Sequence record: NC_042098.1
Length of the DNA: 64,000 nt
Strand: one strand, 5' to 3'
Positions 5,281 through 46,736 of the stretch are shown in pieces. Under the pieces are notes generated by a model that worked only from the letters and a program-made list of their open reading frames with translations, had not been told where the DNA came from and did no database searches. The translations under genes were made by a program, and so were the position numbers. The first letter of the stretch is position 1, and every line of letters starts with the position of its first letter.

Positions 5281-6897
5281 ATGCGGTCAGCATTACTACC
5301 TTTTAACATTAAGATTACTGACTCCAAGCAGATCCCCTGGAGAATGATGCGACCCGTTACGTCGCTCGATATTTACGACGGCCTAACCACTGAGCTGAAC
5401 GATAACGGTCTGTACTCAATTCCCATTTTTGGACGCGTTGGATCGGAAGAACGTGATGAGCGATTTAGCTACATCCACATCAAGTGCGCCGTGTTCCATC
5501 CTGATATCTTCCGGGCACTGACTGCATTAAAGCAGATGTACGCAGGGATTCTCTCCGGTAACGTGTACGCGACATGGAGCGAGGAAGAGAAGGACTTCAT
5601 AAAATCTACCCCGCTTGATGGCGACACCGGTTTTTCCTTCTTTGTTAAACATTGGAAAAGCATAGAATTTAAGCAGACTGGCTCGCCGGCCCGTAGCGAC
5701 AAGATCGCCCTGGTCGAGAAGTTCAAGGATGTGGCCCTCTATCGTAACATCCTGGTCTCACCAGCAGGTATCCGTGAAATCCAGATTGATGAGCGCGGGC
5801 GCACCATCGAGAACGAAGTCAACTCCCTGTACCGTAAGTTATTGTCAGCCGCGAACACCATCACTGATGATCCTTCTGCCGCCGATACCTCACTGTATGA
5901 CTCGGTGCGTTGGTCATTACAGAACCGCTTCAATGAGATCTACAAAAGTTACGCGGACATGCTGGAAGGTAAACGCGGGATCTTACAACAGAAGTGGGGT
6001 CGTCGTCGTATCTTCAACGGCACCCGAAACGTCATCACGGCCGCCCCTATCGGTACAGCCACACTCGGTGCGTTAAACTCCCCGCACATGAATGACACCC
6101 AGATCGGTCTGCATGAACTGGCCCGTGGTGCATTGCCGTTAACCATCCATGGTTTATTGAATGGTTGGCTGAAGCATGTCTTTAATGACGGGACGCGGAT
6201 TCAGGTCATCAACCCGAAGACCCTGAAACAGGAGTCGGTGGAAGTCGACATCCCGACCGTCACCAAGTGGACAACCCAGGAAGGCCTGGAGAAGCTTATC
6301 GCGGGCTTTAAAGATGTGACGTTGCGTAACAAGCCGATCACCATCCAAGGCCGCTACATCGGTTTGGTGTACGCTGACAACGATCATTTCCGGGTGTTCG
6401 GGGATATCGATGAATTACCTGCTTCGTTTAATCGCGAGCTGGTTCATCCGATGACCTACACCGAGTTACTGTACCTGTGTTTGTACCAACGCTGGAACAC
6501 TCTTTATATGCTGGTTACTCGTTACCCCATTACGGGTATGGGGTCGGTATATCAGACCAAAGCGTTTGTGCGCACAACCATCAAATCCAGCGTGAAGATC
6601 GAACTCGATGCCGAATGGAAACCCATTCCTGGCGCGTACGCTACCGCCTTCCCGATTCACGATCGCTTTGCTGAGTTCATGGATTCGCTTTCAGTTCACC
6701 CCAGTCGCCTTGGCTTGCTCGGTGGTGACTACGACGGCGACACCATGTCAGCAACCATCCTGCTCGGTGATGATGTCCTGCGGGAATGTGCGATGCTGCT
6801 CTCACGGCGTGAATCGTACATTACCGGACGCGGCGAGTTCTTGATCGATGTCACCAATGAAACCTTGGACTTTACCCTCAAGGCGCTGACTTCTTAA
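5281..6897 (+). CDS. Virion RNA polymerase beta' subunit, catalytic part (phiKZ gp180-like)
   Basis: N-terminal GLYSIPIFG; LEGKRGILQQKWGRRRIFNGTRNVIT (beta' GKxGR...R.VI region); catalytic GGDYDGD. Likely start is the ATG at 5281 (track start 5257). Confidence 0.92.
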   Translation: MRSALLPFNIKITDSKQIPWRMMRPVTSLDIYDGLTTELNDNGLYSIPIFGRVGSEERDERFSYIHIKCAVFHPDIFRALTALKQMYAGILSGNVYATWSEEEKDFIKSTPLDGDTGFSFFVKHWKSIEFKQTGSPARSDKIALVEKFKDVALYRNILVSPAGIREIQIDERGRTIENEVNSLYRKLLSAANTITDDPSAADTSLYDSVRWSLQNRFNEIYKSYADMLEGKRGILQQKWGRRRIFNGTRNVITAAPIGTATLGALNSPHMNDTQIGLHELARGALPLTIHGLLNGWLKHVFNDGTRIQVINPKTLKQESVEVDIPTVTKWTTQEGLEKLIAGFKDVTLRNKPITIQGRYIGLVYADNDHFRVFGDIDELPASFNRELVHPMTYTELLYLCLYQRWNTLYMLVTRYPITGMGSVYQTKAFVRTTIKSSVKIELDAEWKPIPGAYATAFPIHDRFAEFMDSLSVHPSRLGLLGGDYDGDTMSATILLGDDVLRECAMLLSRRESYITGRGEFLIDVTNETLDFTLKALTS

Positions 6898-41279: not shown

Positions 41280-42419
41280 ATGTCCATGATCGTGAAAATC
41301 ACCTCGGGTGAAGATAAAGCTGACAACAATGTGAGCAAAGGGTTTGAACTGATCCCGGTAGCGGCCGGTATGCGCACTGCCTTTGAGCGCGATGAACAAT
41401 CCCGCGCCTGGTTTAAGTTGTTCAATACGGATGCAGAAGGTATTGAACAGCAACTGCTCACCCGTCAGGTACTGGGTAACGTCTATGTGATGGAAGCCGG
41501 TAAGACTATCGCCAGTTTCTCCTCGGCCGATATCAGTGATATCCGGACGTCAGCAGAAGGCACAGTGTTCTTGAGCAGCCCTGCCAACGGTATCAGTAAC
41601 CAACCTTATACCGAGCCTGCTATCTCTGAGCTCAACGTACTGGGGTATAATGACCGCCTGCACGACTATACCGAGCTACCTTTCATCACCTCAGAAGAAG
41701 TGAATGATGCCCGGGTGTTTAAGTTTCACGCCAACTCAGAGCCAGAAGTCTGGTATGTCAATGCCGATAAAAAGTGGCAGCTGCATGAGCAGGCAACACT
41801 CAACCATCGTCAGTCTGGCGCAGCACCCGGTGATCGCGCAGATGTAGAAGAGTTTGCCAAGGAGCTCACCCCGGTCGTATTTGGCAGCACCGACGTTTCA
41901 GCCAGCAATGATAACATGATGTTTATCAAAACGTTGGCGGCGACGGTGATGACTGCACACGAGAAGAACGCCATTGACTACATGGGTCTGGAATTACTGT
42001 CAATCATTCGAGTGCCGTTCTCGCGCTTAAAAACGCTGGAAGAGTATCTGCGCGTGTGCAAGTATCCGGTGCTGTGTAAGTTCGCCACTGAAGGTACACG
42101 TATTGTGAGTTACCATGTGCGGGCGTATGAGCCAATCAATGACATCCTGCCTGGTACCGAGCTTCTGCTCCAACGTCTCAAAAGCGAACAGAAAGGCCTG
42201 GTAAAGAACCTGGTTGATAAGATCGTTAAGTACTACCGTGCGGATTGCACCGTCGTACCGGTCGAGCCCAACCTGGTTTTTGATGCACTCGAGGATCGGG
42301 CGCTGATTGAGGAGTTCAGACGGTTGCTTAAAATCCAGCTGGACTTCATCATGAACGATGACGGTCATTGCCATACCGCAGTGATCAGTTATCCGAGTAT
42401 CATCCGTATGGGTGCGTAG
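41280..42419 (+). CDS. Hypothetical protein (379 aa)
   Basis: RBS TAAGGA; no recognised motif. Confidence 0.78.
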   Translation: MSMIVKITSGEDKADNNVSKGFELIPVAAGMRTAFERDEQSRAWFKLFNTDAEGIEQQLLTRQVLGNVYVMEAGKTIASFSSADISDIRTSAEGTVFLSSPANGISNQPYTEPAISELNVLGYNDRLHDYTELPFITSEEVNDARVFKFHANSEPEVWYVNADKKWQLHEQATLNHRQSGAAPGDRADVEEFAKELTPVVFGSTDVSASNDNMMFIKTLAATVMTAHEKNAIDYMGLELLSIIRVPFSRLKTLEEYLRVCKYPVLCKFATEGTRIVSYHVRAYEPINDILPGTELLLQRLKSEQKGLVKNLVDKIVKYYRADCTVVPVEPNLVFDALEDRALIEEFRRLLKIQLDFIMNDDGHCHTAVISYPSIIRMGA

Positions 42420-42459
42420 CAGGTATTTGTAAATAAATACTAGATATCTGCTATTACTA

Positions 42460-42715
42460 TGTAAACTACGACGCTCCGAAAATCCCCCAAGATAAAGGAG
42501 TCATAACCTCTCCGTTATGCGCCTCGTAGTTTTCTTTTGAGACAGGCAAGGACGTCGACTGGGTTCAGCTGATACTGTAAAGTGTTGCTGTGTGTGCCCG
42601 GTCCCTTGCCGTCTCCTTTTTCTCGATTTGTGCGATTCTCTTCCAGGCTGTTCTTACCTGATCTCGTGTCAGGAAACAGATCGAAGACAGACATGCGAAT
42701 CAACTTTGGTAGTGC
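42460..42715 (+). ncRNA. Candidate structured sRNA (three long hairpins)
   Basis: AAACTACGA/TCGTAGTTT; GAGAC-A-GGCAAGGAC/GTCCCTTGCCGTCTC; GATTC.TCTTC...GAAGA...GAATC. No credible ORF. Confidence 0.4.
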
Positions 42716-42772
42716 CTACTATATACACACTTAGCTATAAATTTTACTCAAAAGCAATATTAAGGATGACCC

Positions 42773-42940
42773 ATGGACAAGCAGAGAGAAGATTCTATCG
42801 TTGAGATGATGACACTCGCTCAGCGATTAAATAACTTAGTCGTTGGAATGCAAGTCCGCAAAGCCCAGTTAACGTCAGGTTCCGCCAAAGTCGTCGCTGA
42901 TGCAATCAGCAAAGCGAATGTGAAACCTGAGGATCACTGA
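42773..42940 (+). CDS. Small hypothetical protein (55 aa, MDKQREDSIVEMMTLAQRLNNLVVG...), below track cutoff
   Basis: RBS TAAGGA; amphipathic helical sequence. Confidence 0.62.
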   Translation: MDKQREDSIVEMMTLAQRLNNLVVGMQVRKAQLTSGSAKVVADAISKANVKPEDH

Positions 42941-42944
42941 GGTA

Positions 42945-43285
42945 GCCGTAAACGTAGTGGGTATGGTGGGGATCAATGATAGCCCTGCTCGGTGAGTTTG
43001 TTAATCCCCGCCGTATCGCTTCGTAGAACACAGGGTCACTCATGACGTGGGGAGTGGCATAAACACCTGGGGTAGAAGTCCCAACTGCATCCAAAATTCA
43101 ATGACGCCTGTCACAGCCGCTTAAGCGCGCAGAAGATGACTTGTGTGCTCTGTGGCGATACTCGGACTTGCCAGCCTGTGGGGGCGGAGTAAAGTCTGGG
43201 TGTTAGCCCGCTGCCATGTTACCACGTGAAAGTCGTGGGGGCGTCACCCTATTAGATCGATCGCTGACAGTACGTGTTTATGCTT
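42945..43285 (+). ncRNA. Candidate structured RNA with T-loop-type hairpins
   Basis: TGACGCC/GGCGTCA long-range helix; CCACG-TGAAA-GT-CGTGG; ends near TTATGC at about 43278. Confidence 0.35.
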
Positions 43286-43328
43286 ACTTGCTTCTCTGGT
43301 TACGCTAACCTATCGTGAGGAGATAAAC

Positions 43329-43625
43329 ATGAATCTGTATATAGTCAAACGTGATGATAGAGCTGTGGATTTCGAACAGTGTGCGGGGATGGTGGTTGCT
43401 GCGTCGTCTGAGGATGAAGCTTTGCGATTGCACCCGATGGTTCTTGACTCTAGCCACCCAGACAATGCTGAGCGGCACCTGGCTGAATCGGCGGAGAACT
43501 TCGAGGATGGTACGTTGTACGGCTGGCCTAGCCAGGACCGTTTTCACGAACTGACCATAACCTTGATAGGAACCACACACTTGACCGTTCCGCAAGTCCT
43601 GTTACACGACTATAAAGGCGGTTGA
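43329..43625 (+). CDS. Hypothetical protein (98 aa) of a common phage type (vVVaAxSEDEAlrlHP)
   Basis: RBS GAGGAG; hairpin GTCCGGG-GTAATA-CCCGGAC downstream. Confidence 0.75.
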   Translation: MNLYIVKRDDRAVDFEQCAGMVVAASSEDEALRLHPMVLDSSHPDNAERHLAESAENFEDGTLYGWPSQDRFHELTITLIGTTHLTVPQVLLHDYKGG

Positions 43626-43744
43626 TCTAAGTCCGGGGTAATACCCGGACACCCTATTCTGTTTTTCAGTACATCACTGGAAGATACTATCGAGAGCAGC
43701 CACTCCGATACTCTAACTTATAAAGTTTAAAAAGGATAATAACG

Positions 43745-44398
43745 ATGTCAACCGAAATGACCATTTCTCGTGCACTGGCTACAGTGAAGTCTTTGAATGT
43801 CCGCATCAAAGATATCTCTAAAAAGCAGGTGCTGATTCTGCCAACCGCCGGTACTGGCGACATGCAATCGGTGATCAACAACAGCATCACTGTTACCGAT
43901 GCTGAAGCCGCCATCCAGAATAACTGGAATGCGCTGAACGACATGATCAAAGTGCGTAACGATATTCGTGCGAAGATCATCCTGTCGAACGCCACAACCA
44001 AAGTGACCATCGCCGGTAAAGAATACACCATTGTTGAGGCATTGGACTTCCGCAACTCCCTGGTCGAAAAGAAAGACACGGTTGAGTGCCTGAAGCGCAA
44101 CTACGACTCCACAATGAAAGTTCACCGCCAGCAGGGCGACATCTACGAAAAGCGTTTAAGCGATGTGCGCTCCGAAGCCCTGGCCTCCGGCAAGAAGTTT
44201 GATGAAGCCAGCTTGAAGACCTTCACCGATCCAATCGATGTGAAGATGAAACCAGGCCTGATCGATCCTCTGGGTATCTCAGCAGTTATTGAGAAGCTGG
44301 ACAAAGAGATCGCTGACTTCGAACTTAACGCCGACTACGCGTTGTCCGAATCTAACGCAACGACCAAGATCACTGTTGAACTTGGTAACATTGCTTAA
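43745..44398 (+). CDS. Coiled-coil protein, DIP1984/DUF6847-like (217 aa)
   Basis: MTISRAL...I..SNATTKV...TIVEAL...LSESNATTKITVEL: internal SNATTK repeat and all-helical heptads. Family assignment is from memory of the pattern and needs an HMM check. RBS AAGGA. Confidence 0.6.
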   Translation: MSTEMTISRALATVKSLNVRIKDISKKQVLILPTAGTGDMQSVINNSITVTDAEAAIQNNWNALNDMIKVRNDIRAKIILSNATTKVTIAGKEYTIVEALDFRNSLVEKKDTVECLKRNYDSTMKVHRQQGDIYEKRLSDVRSEALASGKKFDEASLKTFTDPIDVKMKPGLIDPLGISAVIEKLDKEIADFELNADYALSESNATTKITVELGNIA

Positions 44399-44445
44399 TC
44401 CGTATTAAAAGGCTTGTCTTCGTTTGACGAAAGATCAAACACCGC

Positions 44446-44483
44446 CTTCCTATTTGGCCGGATGGAAGTAAAATAACCGGCCA
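44446..44483 (+). ncRNA. H-type pseudoknot 1
   Basis: CTTCC(44446-50)/GGAAG(44464-68) and TGGCCGG(44455-61)/CCGGCCA(44477-83), with A-rich loop TAAAATAA. Confidence 0.5.
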
Positions 44484-44494
44484 GCCATTATACA

Positions 44495-44560
44495 TCTGTA
44501 GGTCGCAGGTTCGATTCCTGTCGGGGTGAAACCCGTAGCTCAGTCGGTTAGAGCAGCAGA
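44495..44560 (+). ncRNA. Circularly permuted tRNA-like module (T-arm, loop-closed acceptor stem, D-arm); Y-RNA/YrlA-like topology
   Basis: TCTGT-AGGTC-GCAGG-TTCGATT-CCTGT-CGGGGTGAAACCCG-TA-GCTC-AGTCGGTTA-GAGC-A-GCAGA: every tRNA arm has canonical length but the halves are swapped. No anticodon loop and no CCA. Confidence 0.8.
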
Positions 44561-44603
44561 ACAACTGCTTATGCTAAAAGCAATGATCTTTGGGATCATC
44601 AAT

Positions 44604-44632
44604 GGTGTACTGTGAGCACCTTGAAATCACAG
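44604..44632 (+). ncRNA. H-type pseudoknot 2
   Basis: GGTGT/GCACC stem; loop CTGTGA(44610-15) pairs with TCACAG(44627-32). Confidence 0.5.
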
Positions 44633-44633
44633 G

Positions 44634-44757
44634 TCTAAAGCTTAAAGCTATAACGTATAATGACTAAAGCTCTAAAGGTTTAAACTTATAACGTTAAAAA
44701 GATCTACACTCCCTGATGACTGTGTTCGTCGGGCTATAACGCTAAAACCTTTTAAAC
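44634..44757 (+). repeat. Degenerate 7-8 nt A-rich tandem repeats (YYWAAAG / TATAACG)
   Basis: TCTAAAG CTTAAAG CTATAACG TATAATG ACTAAAG CTCTAAAG GTTTAAAC TTATAACG TTAAAAAG ... CTATAACG CTAAAAC TTTTAAAC. Confidence 0.7.
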
Positions 44758-45492
44758 AAATCCTGGGTATTCCTCCGCTGTGAGGATGGGTAATGTGGAG
44801 TGTGGTCTGCCACGTATCGCCGCCAGGCTGTCTTGCGGAGACAAGTCTTTCCCTTTTGCAATAGGTGACCTAATGACAGGCACTGCATTAATGATCATTG
44901 AGCAACCACAACCGGAATTCAATATCCCGTTGAGGTCGCCTTATCCTGCCCTTCATGACGTAAGGTTTTCTATGTTCCCTGTTATGGGTGAGCCTGAGAA
45001 CGAAGGGTTTGAACAAGATTCAGAAACTGACGCATTACATTGAGGAGATTCAATCGCGCAGGTTCTTAACCGACTAAAGCCAGGGTGACTTGTGTTATCT
45101 TGGTAAAAGGTGAACGCGTCGTTACAGCGCATACGACTGAATGGGCCGATCCCCCCTTCGGAGTAATATTAGCCCAGATCCATTGCACACCGATAAGTCA
45201 ATGGCTAGCCAGACACACAAAAAAACTATTATGCTTCGACAGATGGTAGGTGCCTGATTACTACAATTCGATTCGATACCTCAACTAAAAGGCGGACACA
45301 AGGGCCGTTATGAGTGAAGCACCAGGAAACTATACCTTGGTAAGGCCCCAGGTTTTTTATCCTTACCAAGGTTCTCTTTCTTTTACTGCCTGATAATGGG
45401 TGGATGTCTTAGTCACCTTTCTTTCACAGAGGCAACAACCTAAGGCGTCTGCCCGCCCTATAACCCGAGTCGTCTAGCGACAAGACACCGTC

Positions 45493-45573
45493 AGACCCAT
45501 TTGGTAACAGCCTAACTTACCTGTTACCCAACCTATGACGGAAACAGGTGGTTCAACTCCACCTCTTGGGTCT
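45493..45573 (+). ncRNA. Second tRNA-like element (7-bp closing stem, 8-bp hairpin, T-arm)
   Basis: AGACCCA/TGGGTCT; GGTAACAG/CTGTTACC; AGGTGG-TTCAACT-CCACCT. Confidence 0.5.
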
Positions 45574-45649
45574 TAGGTATTGGCTTAGGCAAACTCCGTC
45601 GCGGCTTTACCCTCAATAGGCTGCGTTGCGTAAGTCAGTACCGTGCTGT

Positions 45650-45805
45650 GCGTCGTACTCCCTGATGAGGCGCCCGACGTTAAAAGGCACGAAACGGGGA
45701 CAGAGGATACTCCATCGGTGATTGCAATCAACCACGCTGGGGTTTATACAGGCACTTGAGAGACACGCTGGTTTCTCGTTGCCTGTCCCTTTGTCCCGTC
45801 GGAGT
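45650..45805 (+). ncRNA. Type I hammerhead ribozyme
   Basis: Stem I ACTCC/GGAGT; core CTGATGA (45662-68) and GAAA (45691-94); stem II closed by G-C; stem III CGGGGACAGAGG/CCTTTGTCCCG; GUC cleavage triplet at 45798-45800; loop-II CGACG pairs with upstream CGTCG. Confidence 0.82.
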
Positions 45806-46208
45806 CCCTTGCGTTCCTGGAGGGATGACACCGCGTTAAGACTGATCCCCTTAACGAAGTTGCAATAGCCGGGGGGTGTTTCTTGCAAAGGTTACTCACA
45901 GCAGACTGCCTCCGCCAATTGCGGATGGCTTAGGCCCTCAGCCCGTCAGGAAGTTGTCGTTGAATAAATGACAGCTGGACTAGGGTTGCATTATAACCCG
46001 GCAAATGTGCAGCCTGTTTTTTCTTCATGTGTACCTGAACCGGTTCAGGAGCCTACAGATGAGGGAACGACGGGAAGCATATTGCTACCGATCATTTGCT
46101 GTGTGACCGGGCCAAGGATGGCATATACCGGAACCAGTAGTCGTATTCAGCGCAGGTGCGCTTTCTCTTCCTTATCTTGTGGTTAAACCGCACCTGTCTG
46201 GATCATAT

Positions 46209-46237
46209 GTGCCGGGGTCACACCTGGCGCTTATGCC
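46209..46237 (+). terminator. Hairpin plus TTATGCC closing the non-coding locus
   Basis: GTGCCGGG-GTCACA-CCTGGCGC-TTATGCC. Confidence 0.6.
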
Positions 46238-46263
46238 GTCTGAGTTGTATCCTTTTTTACTCC

Positions 46264-46271
46264 TACATTAC
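46264..46271 (+). promoter_or_regulatory. Early promoter motif TACATTAC
   Basis: One mismatch to TATATTAC; upstream of the 46314 cluster. Confidence 0.55.
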
Positions 46272-46313
46272 GAAGCTGATATACCCATCAATTCAATTTA
46301 AAGGAGTTTAGTT

Positions 46314-46736
46314 ATGAAGAACGTTACTATTGCTATTGGTCGTAATCCGCTGTCCAACCAGAAATGGATTCTGGATCAGATCGTGAGTCTGGTGAAGTCC
46401 GGCAAGTCCGACATCTTCATCGTAAATACTGACTCACGGGTTTCCACTGCGGTACTCAATGCCTTGAAAGAGTATACGAAGGATGATGCGGAATACACTC
46501 GCTTGGTTGCTGAGAACGGTGTCATGTTCCACACAACCGAGACCGAAGATCTGCAAACGCTGGATGATGCTAAGATGAACAGCCGCTCGGCGATTCTGGC
46601 CAACATGCTGTTCAGCCTGCCATTGGTCAAACAGTGTCGTGATCTGGCCCGTCACCATGTCCCGGTCTTTGTGAGTGCCACACCTGCCATGTCTGGTAAG
46701 GTGCCGGCTTCCGCCCATACCAAGTTCCTCGATTAA
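46314..46736 (+). CDS. Hypothetical protein (140 aa)
   Basis: RBS AAAGGAG. Confidence 0.78.
   Translation: MKNVTIAIGRNPLSNQKWILDQIVSLVKSGKSDIFIVNTDSRVSTAVLNALKEYTKDDAEYTRLVAENGVMFHTTETEDLQTLDDAKMNSRSAILANMLFSLPLVKQCRDLARHHVPVFVSATPAMSGKVPASAHTKFLD

Follow-up and report, generated by a model that had tools for sequence, protein, structure and literature searches.

A permuted tRNA-like module as an arm of a structured RNA of about 445 nt beside gp202 in Erwinia phage vB_EamM_Desertfox

The DNA considered here is a stretch of 64,000 nucleotides (the window) of record NC_042098.1, the 272-kb genome of the Agricanvirus jumbo phage vB_EamM_Desertfox of Erwinia. Coordinates refer to the window, in which position 43000 corresponds to position 167000 of the record, and all features of the RNA described below lie on the plus strand. 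Our subject is a tRNA-like module at 44495-44560, in which the 3′ half of a tRNA precedes its 5′ half. The module falls in an unannotated gap bounded on the left by gp202 (43745-44398, +), a gene supported by its open reading frame (ORF), its annotation and a PHROG match, and on the right by the small ORF gp203 (44873-45043). It is a peripheral arm of a multi-domain RNA of ~445 nt that fills most of this gap.

Read in the 5′ to 3′ direction, the module consists of the 3′ strand of an anticodon-like stem, a variable loop, a T arm, an acceptor stem closed by a hairpin, a D arm and the 5′ strand of the anticodon-like stem. The anticodon-like stem pairs TCTGT (44495-99) with GCAGA (44556-60). Between its strands lie the variable loop AGGTC (44500-04), the T arm GCAGG-TTCGATT-CCTGT (44505-21), the 14-nt hairpin CGGGGTGAAACCCG that closes the acceptor (44522-35), the dinucleotide TA in the place of U8-A9 (44536-37), the D arm GCTC-AGTCGGTTA-GAGC (44538-54) and A26 (44555). 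The tRNA invariants U8, A14, G18G19, G53-T54-T55-C56, A58 and C61 are all found, together with a pair of the G15/C48 type, while the module has neither an anticodon loop nor a free CCA end. An earlier note on this DNA had described the swapped halves, the retained elbow nucleotides and the missing anticodon and CCA, and the bases read exactly as claimed there. These features lead us to read the element as a circularly permuted tRNA mimic that would keep the L-shaped elbow of a tRNA.

YrlA (RF02553), the family of bacterial Y RNAs with a permuted tRNA-like part, is the sole Rfam family that matches the module when matches are reported by E-value. The match has 44.5 bits (E = 1.1e-8 in a search of 601 nt and 7.6e-8 in one of 4 kb) and spans model positions 23-87, that is, 65 of the 114 positions, comprising the tRNA-like part only. 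It supports the assignment of the order T arm, closed acceptor, D arm to the YrlA topology. As a test of family membership the same search gave a divided answer, with the tRNA-like part matching and the score lying below the YrlA gathering score of 69; over the window, no Rfam family is found at or above its gathering score. The tRNA and tmRNA models of Rfam do not match the module at E-values up to 10, and ARAGORN reports 0 tRNA and 0 tmRNA in the window and the rest of the Desertfox genome, in line with the expectation that standard tRNA scanners would miss the element. A tRNA gene of normal order was rejected in view of the permuted order, the closed acceptor and the lack of an ARAGORN call or Rfam tRNA match. 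A permuted tRNA gene of the Cyanidioschyzon type, whose maturation involves a circular RNA and which has a full 7-bp acceptor, was also rejected: most acceptors among the homologues described below have 4-6 bp, and the outer ends of the module pair into a surrounding helix (P-mid) with no anticodon-loop pattern. Outside the module, the 272-kb genome has neither another GGTTCGANTCC T-loop consensus nor another complete D-arm consensus, and the occurrence of the module exceeds chance expectation by far.

The module belongs to a 474-nt intergenic block that is conserved at 100% identity in 15 of 16 closely related Erwinia phage records and at 99.8% in two others, compared with 99.0–99.3% identity in the flanking 3.5 kb; the module itself is 100% identical among the Agricanvirus records. 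The copy in Erwinia phage AH06 has 89% identity, and further divergent copies that can still be aligned are found in the Salmonella jumbo phage SA002, in Erwinia phage pEa_SNUABM_48 (SNUABM48) and in a 287-kb IMG/VR contig. Seven more metagenomic contigs with copies of the RNA were reached via homologues of gp202. The comparison in related phages that the earlier note had proposed shows all four helices of the module kept across 12 sequences, with compensatory substitutions. The anticodon-like stem changes from TCTGT/GCAGA to ACTTT/AAAGT, and in the T stem GCAGG/CCTGT is replaced by GTGGG/CCCAT or ATCGG/CCGAT. In the closed acceptor the sequence has changed completely, yet it remains paired in every copy (CGGG/CCCG, TAGCC/GGCTA, TGTACGGG/CCCGTTCA and TAGATGGGC/GCCCATTTA). 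The D arm and both loops are near-invariant. Acceptor stems are 4-6 bp long and without CCA in Desertfox, AH06, SNUABM48 and contig L284, and range from 4 to 9 bp in the clade.

The RNA that carries the module extends over ~443 nt (44408-44850), from the 5′ to the 3′ strand of a long outer helix, P1, as delimited by conservation, minimum free energy (MFE) folds and covariation. It is followed by a conserved pyrimidine tail of the CCCUUUU type, which reaches to ~44860. P1 was first seen in an inverted-repeat scan, where 44408-44422 pairs with 44836-44850 across 413 nt; the full helix has 16 bp, formed by AAAGGCTTGTCTTCGT (44408-44423) and GCGGAGACAAGTCTTT (44835-44850), and is predicted by RNAalifold from five phages as well as by the MFE fold of each of the five sequences computed without constraints. 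The RNA can be assigned to the plus strand from G-U pairs that are conserved in P1. Inside P1, helix P1b pairs GACG (44426-29) with TGTC (44829-32), covaries, and overlaps the string GACGAAAG discussed below. In P1 and P1b together, 12 of 20 pairs change on both sides and 95% of the cells are paired in 12 sequences.

The next domain is an H-type pseudoknot (44446-44483), which covaries and is present also in phages T5, PVP-SE1 and Vibrio phage Cody. Its stem S1 (CTTCC, 44446-50, with GGAAG, 44464-68) is 100% paired in 12 sequences with two covarying pairs, and stem S2 (TGGCCGG, 44455-61, with CCGGCCA, 44477-83) is paired in 35 of 35 cells with four covarying pairs in a register-corrected table. 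Loop 3 of the pseudoknot, UAAAAUAA, is A-rich and conserved. P-mid follows, formed by CCATTATAC (44485-93) and GTATAATGA (44655-63) and detected as an inverted repeat of 44483-44493 with 44655-44665. In the five phages, with single bulges removed by hand, it is paired in 42 of 45 cells, and seven of its nine pairs change on both sides.

P-mid encloses the tRNA-like module and a set of lineage-variable hairpins. The latter, read from the sequence, are TGCTT/AAGCA (44566-82) and ATGATC/GATCAT (44583-99), followed by a possible second pseudoknot of GGTG with CACC (44604-07/44617-20) and CTGTGA with TCACAG (44610-15/44627-32). In place of the last helix, AH06 has CCGTGA/TCACGG and the IMG/VR contig has CCATAG/CTATGG. 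The hairpins of 44566-44632 are not conserved in the SA002 clade, and the fold model for this part is tentative. The 3′ strand of P-mid lies in an A/U-rich region (44633-44740) with direct repeats of YAAAG and of UAUAACG-like elements. The repeated TAAAG..TATAACG was considered as a general phage promoter and rejected, the motif being confined to this locus rather than spread through the window; the covariation of P-mid indicates that part of it is paired RNA. The 3′ domain (44762-44827) is closed by CCTGG (44762-66) with CCAGG (44823-27), a helix that is 100% paired and shows a compensatory change to CCCGG/CCGGG in the IMG/VR clade. It contains internal hairpins, whose pairs are supported in part only.

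The alignment of five phages (Desertfox, AH06, SA002, SNUABM48 and the IMG/VR contig) was compared with slid controls, in which the 3′ partners were moved by 1–3 columns. Of 55 in-register pairs, 94.9% of cells are paired, compared with 38–48% in the slid controls, and 18 pairs change on both sides, compared with 0–4; none of 500 shuffles reaches the observed value. With 12 sequences, 43 pairs are 95.5% paired and 23 of them change on both sides, again with 0 of 500 shuffles reaching the observation. The register-corrected table, which adds S2 and P-mid, holds 64 pairs, 97.5% of them canonical and 27 covarying. The predicted fold, comprising P1/P1b, the pseudoknot, P-mid, the tRNA-like arm and the 3′ domain, is thus shown by compensatory changes in the aligned copies to be maintained, and we regard the structure and context of the RNA as very likely correct.

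The combination of indels that are not multiples of three with helix-preserving substitutions excludes a protein-coding explanation of the block. Small hypothetical ORFs are annotated over the conserved RNA in several relatives (L003 3184-3369; L251 2446-2538), inconsistently placed among genomes, and are probably spurious. As for gp203 of Desertfox, its start lies 3′ of the RNA, and AH06 keeps only part of it.

Because the RNA begins ~10 nt past the stop codon of gp202 in the jumbo phages, it could be considered a cis-acting element, either a 3′ untranslated region, terminator or attenuator of gp202 or the 5′ leader of the next gene, rather than an RNA acting in trans. The 3′ strand of P1 also has an alternative pairing as a local hairpin, with a T-rich tract after it, as a terminator would have. 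However, this hairpin is not conserved in SNUABM48, where P1 is, and a local terminator competing with P1 was rejected for that reason. In Bacillus phage Hobo a separate terminator-like hairpin stands between the gene and the RNA. The downstream gene varies among phages and is often a tRNA gene, and the size and complexity of the RNA are above those of known attenuators. We therefore consider a purely cis-acting role quite improbable.

The similarity to YrlA raises the question of Ro60, the protein partner of Y RNAs. YrlA is defined by its tRNA-like module, a 5′ GNCGAAN0-1G motif and a Ro60/TROVE gene within ~4 kb on the same strand, and nearly all known YrlA genes lie at most 4 kb from a same-strand Ro60 gene (PMC4201824). 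The earlier note had seen no Ro60/TROVE gene in the window. This is true and extends to the whole 272-kb Desertfox genome, where searches with three phage Ro60 proteins gave a best tblastn E-value of 0.37 and a best E-value of 0.84 with a hidden Markov model (HMM). The HMM was built from the same three proteins, which come from IMG/VR loci used as a positive control; there, the canonical arrangement was recovered, with permuted modules directly 5′ of TROVE genes. No TROVE gene was found in the homologous RNA loci either. In a broader tblastn comparison of one phage Ro60 with 50,697 phage records, 442 records matched, and phages of Erwinia and Enterococcus fall outside the ten commonest genera of these TROVE-positive records.

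The second defining feature of YrlA has a possible counterpart. The string GACGAAAG at 44426-33, ~65 nt 5′ of the module, fits GNCGAAN0-1G, the putative Ro60 contact of YrlA (PMC4201824), in Desertfox, AH06 and the IMG/VR clade. SA002, L285, SNUABM48, L284 and L286 have GCGGG(A/U)U in its place. We do not accept GACGAAAG as a conserved Ro-binding motif, since it is replaced in the SA002 and SNUABM48 clades and overlaps P1b. There is also no Ro-type stem directly enclosing the module, which is enclosed by P-mid and then by P1 in an RNA of ~443 nt with other domains.

It is nevertheless conceivable that the RNA is a genuine Y RNA acting through a Ro60 (Rsr) of the host, with P1/P1b and GACGAAAG as the Ro site and the arm as effector. 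YrlA is the only Rfam match, a long stem of paired RNA ends is a hallmark of Y RNAs, and the motif fits the putative Ro60 contact in part of the family. Salmonella, the host of SA002, has Rsr (PMC4201824). Desertfox encodes an RtcB, and in Salmonella rtcB is found in one operon with rsr and yrlBA. Against this, the YrlA score is under the gathering threshold and only the tRNA-like part aligns, the SA002 and SNUABM48 clades, the Salmonella phage included, have GCGGGUU or GCGGGAU instead of the motif, and the RNA has four times the size of a Y RNA. The phage genome differs from nearly all YrlA loci (PMC4201824) in that no Ro60 gene was found in it. Moreover, T5 has the core RNA without the module (see below). 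E. coli K-12, the host of T5, carries rtcBA and is not known to have rsr. Taken together, a Y RNA that depends on host Ro60 is unlikely.

The RtcB of Desertfox (gp48, L124 44471-45709; Pfam 8e-126) is accompanied by a Tpt1/KptA RNA 2′-phosphotransferase (gp82, L125 19327-19908; 5e-39), so that a phage without tRNA genes of its own encodes two tRNA-splicing or repair enzymes. RtcB is common to AH06 and SNUABM48. A strict co-occurrence of RtcB with the RNA was rejected, as SA002 is absent from the close RtcB matches.

The likeness to YrlA thus has to be divided. The RNA has in common with YrlA the permuted arm order, the conserved T-loop, D-loop and U8 nucleotides and the missing anticodon, and some of its members keep a 7-bp acceptor with CCA, as does YrlA of Mycobacterium smegmatis (PMC4201824). 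In contrast, YrlA is a stem-closed RNA of ~110 nt (80–130 nt) in which the stem formed by the ends carries the module, whereas here the module is nested in 445 nt, no Ro60 gene was found in the genome and the 5′ motif is not conserved. Canonical phage YrlA loci (in mycobacteriophages and in the IMG/VR records L033, L044 and L119) also encode a permuted module, but the RNA there lies directly 5′ of a TROVE/Ro60 gene, followed in one case by RlaP and a CCA-adding enzyme. Of the Y-RNA likeness claimed in the earlier note, then, the module topology stands. The element is not a Y RNA of YrlA size, the module being an arm of the ~445-nt RNA with a score below the gathering threshold. YrlA-like topology is supported for the module; membership in the YrlA family is not supported, as three features that define it were looked for and not found here: a gathering-level score over the full-length model, an RNA of 80–130 nt whose end stem directly carries the module, and a same-strand Ro60 gene within ~4 kb.

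The wider family of the RNA was approached through gp202, a protein of the T5.085 family (phrog_1491, PHROG E = 1e-72) annotated as “tail fiber protein”. Homologues are found in 716 phage records and include T5.085 of T5 itself; the genes (T5.085, L276 3001-3639) are located in early or tRNA regions. The synteny of gp202 with the RNA holds in AH06, SA002, SNUABM48, the 287-kb IMG/VR contig and eight metagenomic contigs, and the RNA lies directly 3′ of gp202 in all homologues examined. The RNA, or an unannotated gap of matching size (360–490 nt), was checked in 17 distinct loci of T5-like, Seunavirus, Vibrio, Bacillus and jumbo phages. Such a gap follows the gene in all phages examined other than contig L288, whose sequence stops just past the gene, and IMG/VR L130, the most distant IMG/VR relative of gp202 (28% identity), where a terminator and a coding gene come next and no RNA is present. 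The invariant synteny makes gp202 the obvious candidate for a protein partner of the RNA. Its predicted structure is an all-helical bundle (pLDDT 89.9) with two conserved motifs of the SNATT type, and a comparison with BFVD matched uncharacterised phage proteins only. With an all-helical model and no structural match to fibre proteins, the label “tail fiber protein” is unsupported.

In T5, the gp202 homologue is followed by an unannotated 363-nt gap. The gap has a closing helix of CTAGTAAATCGGT with ATCGGTTTACTAG (13 of 13 paired), carries the GACGAAAG string, and contains a pseudoknot (CCTCG/CGAGG and CAGCGGT/ACCGCTG with loop UUAAAUAAG), YAAAG repeats and a 3′ domain closed by CCTAG/CTAGG. 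It has no T-loop and no Rfam YrlA match. The PVP-SE1 RNA likewise has the closing helix, the pseudoknot and a 3′ domain closed by CCTGG/CCGGG, and that of Cody the closing helix and pseudoknot; a T-loop was not found in either. Gaps of comparable length that contain YAAAG repeats are found in Hobo and in Pseudomonas phage VCM; their 5′ halves are too divergent for confident alignment or pseudoknot assignment. The YAAAG element is over-represented 4–7 times in the RNAs of Desertfox, T5, PVP-SE1, Hobo and VCM. A nhmmer profile of twelve jumbo-type RNAs matched the gaps of PVP-SE1 (E = 2.4e-8), T5 (6.3e-7) and VCM (0.006), the match in T5 and PVP-SE1 being to the A/U-rich repeat part. A 14-base pattern from the 5′ region, CAAACACCGCCNTCC, was rejected as a probe for homologues because it gave only chance matches in IMG/VR.

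These comparisons show that the core RNA and the gp202-family gene are widespread, in T5, PVP-SE1 and other phages, without the tRNA-like arm, and the arm is for this reason best seen as an accessory acquisition of one clade. Rfam (release 15) has no family for the core RNA, as searched at E-values up to 5 for 42400-46400, up to 1 for the T5 locus and up to 0.01 for 11 further loci. The literature on tRNA-like non-coding RNAs of jumbo phages, on Ro60 of Erwinia and on stable RNAs of T5 yielded nothing describing this RNA. The core RNA appears to be an undescribed phage RNA family.

Among known large RNAs, GOLLD and ROOL are comparable as structured non-coding RNAs of phages and prophages beside tRNA genes, but neither matches 42400-46400 at E-values up to 5, and the RNA described here is smaller, differs in architecture and is tied to a specific protein gene. 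The “RNAX” of T5 is a stable RNA from the phage tRNA cluster, annotated at a distance of 1.9 kb from the homologue of the gp202-linked RNA in T5; it differs in locus and sequence, and the RNA 3′ of T5.085 is unannotated. The rnaX feature (L276 5578-6296) is a 719-nt “stable RNA with unknown functions” with a tRNA-like Rfam match at 5641-5712. Stable RNAs co-located with phage tRNA genes also include the species 1 and 2 RNAs of T4.

The gene-plus-RNA unit stands among tRNA genes in PVP-SE1, Cody and Hobo, and a tRNA gene begins a few nucleotides past the 3′ strand of the RNA in PVP-SE1, L281 and L286. Downstream of the RNA, at 0.3–1.7 kb, SNUABM48 has tRNA-Asn and tRNA-Tyr, and SA002 has a tRNA-like Rfam match and tRNA-Tyr. 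In Simmy50, RAY, Ea35-70 and other relatives of Desertfox a tRNA-Asn(GTT) gene lies ~1.3 kb upstream (window ~43100; L001 1601-1678). It is missing from Desertfox and Deimos-Minion, and according to ARAGORN no tRNA gene is left anywhere in Desertfox. Near the tRNA-Asn site, a gene for an HNH endonuclease is present in MadMel and Special G. That the arm is intact although Desertfox lost tRNA-Asn and has no tRNA gene points to selection for tRNA shape as such.

The tRNA surroundings suggest how the arm may have arisen. In SA002, L285 and L286 the acceptor hairpin consists of 7 nt, G and CCA, a short loop and a complementary 5′ strand (L122 ~2590-2615; L285 ~2285-2306; L286 ~2277-2298), which is the expected remnant of the 3′ end of one tRNA gene fused to the 5′ end of the next. 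Contig L287, whose gp202 is 44% identical, has a permuted class-II module at the same position of the RNA (~2245-2345); its D arm, GGCGGAATAGGTAAACGC, is like that of tRNA-Leu, and its variable arm forms a long hairpin. When IMG/VR was searched for the pattern T arm followed by D arm, most matches proved to be ordinary junctions between tRNA genes, so that the raw material for a permuted module is demonstrably at hand.

The same observation could be taken to mean that the module merely marks where two adjoining tRNA genes decayed, a relic that is neutral and has no function of its own, and the region did lose a tRNA gene in Desertfox. Yet the outer halves of the supposed tRNAs are gone while the helices and elbow invariants are kept in lineages whose gp202 proteins are only 44–56% identical. 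The complete identity of the module among Agricanvirus records and its position within covarying long-range helices also speak against decay. The relic reading is strongly disfavoured, and we give it very little credence.

A functional permuted tRNA, or a two-piece RNA resembling tmRNA, would require that the acceptor loop be cut by RNase P and 3′ trimming, the RNA perhaps rejoined elsewhere by the phage RtcB, and the product charged. Such a reading can draw on the 7-bp acceptor, G-CCA and short loop of SA002, L285 and L286, on the phage-encoded RtcB and Tpt1, and on the order of pseudoknot, T arm, acceptor and D side, which resembles that of a permuted tmRNA gene. Indeed, tmRNA, including its permuted two-piece form, has in common with the present RNA a tRNA-like domain with pseudoknots and a T arm that precedes the 5′ side of the acceptor. 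The differences are that the RNA described here has a full D stem and no tag frame, and that most members have no free or chargeable acceptor end. The acceptors of Desertfox, AH06, SNUABM48 and L284 are too short, at 4-6 bp, and lack CCA; the flanks of the anticodon-like stem are locked in P-mid, with no U33 or anticodon-loop pattern; neither ARAGORN nor the Rfam tmRNA and tRNA models report a match, as noted; and what looks like a reading frame further downstream is interrupted by indels in relatives. Acceptor length, the ARAGORN and Rfam results and covariation led us to reject tmRNA, a functional permuted tRNA and a relic junction alike, and a chargeable RNA of this kind seems highly improbable.

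Permuted modules are not confined to RNAs linked to gp202. A second kind of orphan RNA, of ~100–125 nt and closed by its own stem, often with a ACAGCAAATAAC motif and sometimes in tandem, was seen in Enterococcus phage EFDG1 (L123 2302-2409 and 2480-2603) and in L252, L256, L258, L265, L267, L269 and L270. As a rule these RNAs are embedded in tRNA arrays of phages, and the neighbourhoods fetched contain no TROVE gene. A giant-virus metagenome-assembled genome (MAG) has a closed-acceptor permuted module as well (contig L064 10475-10512), within an array of 25 tRNA genes. The orphan YrlA-like RNAs (EFDG1; L106, L112, L252, L256, L265 and L267) are similar to the module of Desertfox in scoring below the YrlA threshold (~35–48 bits) and in standing among tRNA genes with no TROVE gene in the fetched neighbourhood, but they differ in size, in having their own stem, and in having no pseudoknot, no P1 and no association with gp202.

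The orphan modules in tRNA arrays of unrelated phages and of the giant-virus MAG are among the observations that would fit a decoy or sponge in a conflict over tRNA, in which the arm soaks up a defence protein that senses tRNA shape or a toxin that acts on the acceptor and T-arm side. Conservation of the elbow is complete, with the anticodon loop and CCA end missing, and RtcB and Tpt1 provide the phage with enzymes for RNA repair. The RNA also sits in tRNA islands, a type of phage locus known for counter-defence, as with a T5 tRNA that acts against PARIS (PMC11464382). On the other hand, the best-known defences against tRNAs recognise or cleave the anticodon loop, a part that the module lacks, PADLOC gives nothing for gp202, and the T5-type RNAs do without the arm. 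An elbow decoy or scaffold with a partner other than Ro, as the earlier note had suggested, is a plausible hypothesis; a sponge for a specific defence protein or toxin we regard as doubtful.

The explanation that we prefer, with a confidence only slightly above even, is that a YrlA-type permuted tRNA-like domain has become an arm of the gp202-linked RNA in a clade of Erwinia and Salmonella jumbo phages, where the RNA is encoded in the tRNA/stable-RNA island, and may act there as a handle. The arm would have originated from phage tRNA genes by a fusion in which the 3′ half of one gene came to precede the 5′ half of the gene after it or of a duplicated copy. The RNA may be transcribed together with gp202 and the tRNA cluster and trimmed by tRNA-processing enzymes, its 3′ end being set by processing at the adjacent tRNA or at the P1 tail. 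Host proteins of tRNA maturation or elbow binding, such as RNase P, TruB, TrmA, Dus and the CCA-adding enzyme, might then recognise the arm, and this recognition would stabilise the RNA and tether those or other tRNA-binding factors, with no involvement of Ro60. YrlA provides the precedent for such recognition: in Salmonella Typhimurium it is modified by TruB and DusA, and in M. smegmatis, where it has a 7-bp acceptor, RNase P cuts it and CCA is added, while the role of the tRNA-like module in Y RNAs is still open (PMC4201824). By analogy, the tRNA-length acceptor of the SA002 clade could be an RNase P substrate like that of M. smegmatis YrlA. Of the roles considered, we find most likely that of a handle in the shape of a tRNA, by which the RNA is stabilised and factors that bind tRNA are tethered; this specific role is a tentative proposal, held with less than even confidence.

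We further speculate that the protein of the gp202/T5.085 family and its RNA of ~360–450 nt form an undescribed and widespread phage ribonucleoprotein of tRNA islands. One clade of jumbo phages would have captured a permuted tRNA of class I or class II as a docking arm, linking the particle to the tRNA-processing or tRNA-sensing machinery independently of Ro60. This is one possible scenario, which we put forward with less than even confidence.

Several points weigh against the explanation that we prefer. We infer the ends of the RNA from P1, the pyrimidine tail and the adjacent tRNA genes, and the structure of the A/U-rich middle and of the 3′ domain is resolved in part only. On the side of the protein, Foldseek gave no informative match of the gp202 model to the PDB, and sequence searches of Pfam, NCBIfam, PADLOC and the PDB gave no functional lead. 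Acceptor stems ranging from 4 to 9 bp imply that RNase P cleavage is not a property of the whole clade. The RNAs of the T5 type, having no arm, indicate that the arm is dispensable for the core function, and the arm could be mainly a stabilising structural element.

Further downstream, the 1.27 kb at 45044-46313 have no annotated gene in Desertfox, and relatives annotate tiny ORFs only. The segment contains several inverted repeats, among them a perfect 12-bp hairpin followed by a T run at 45334-45372, and a scan of the segment with Rfam gave no match. It may encode additional non-coding RNAs.

Until now, tRNA mimics of the Y-RNA type could be explained only through their partnership with Ro60. 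In the Desertfox lineage such a module is under strong selection, with no Ro60 gene found, and is grafted on a larger RNA, which argues that the arm has a job of its own. The analysis of the module also brought to light a conserved unit of gene and RNA that hundreds of phages have in their tRNA islands, and it calls into question the “tail fiber” label of gp202/T5.085 as well as the small ORFs annotated over the RNA. Because the unit is present in T5, its function is directly testable in E. coli K-12. If the ribonucleoprotein reading is true, the arm would link the particle to the tRNA-processing or tRNA-sensing machinery of the cell without Ro60.

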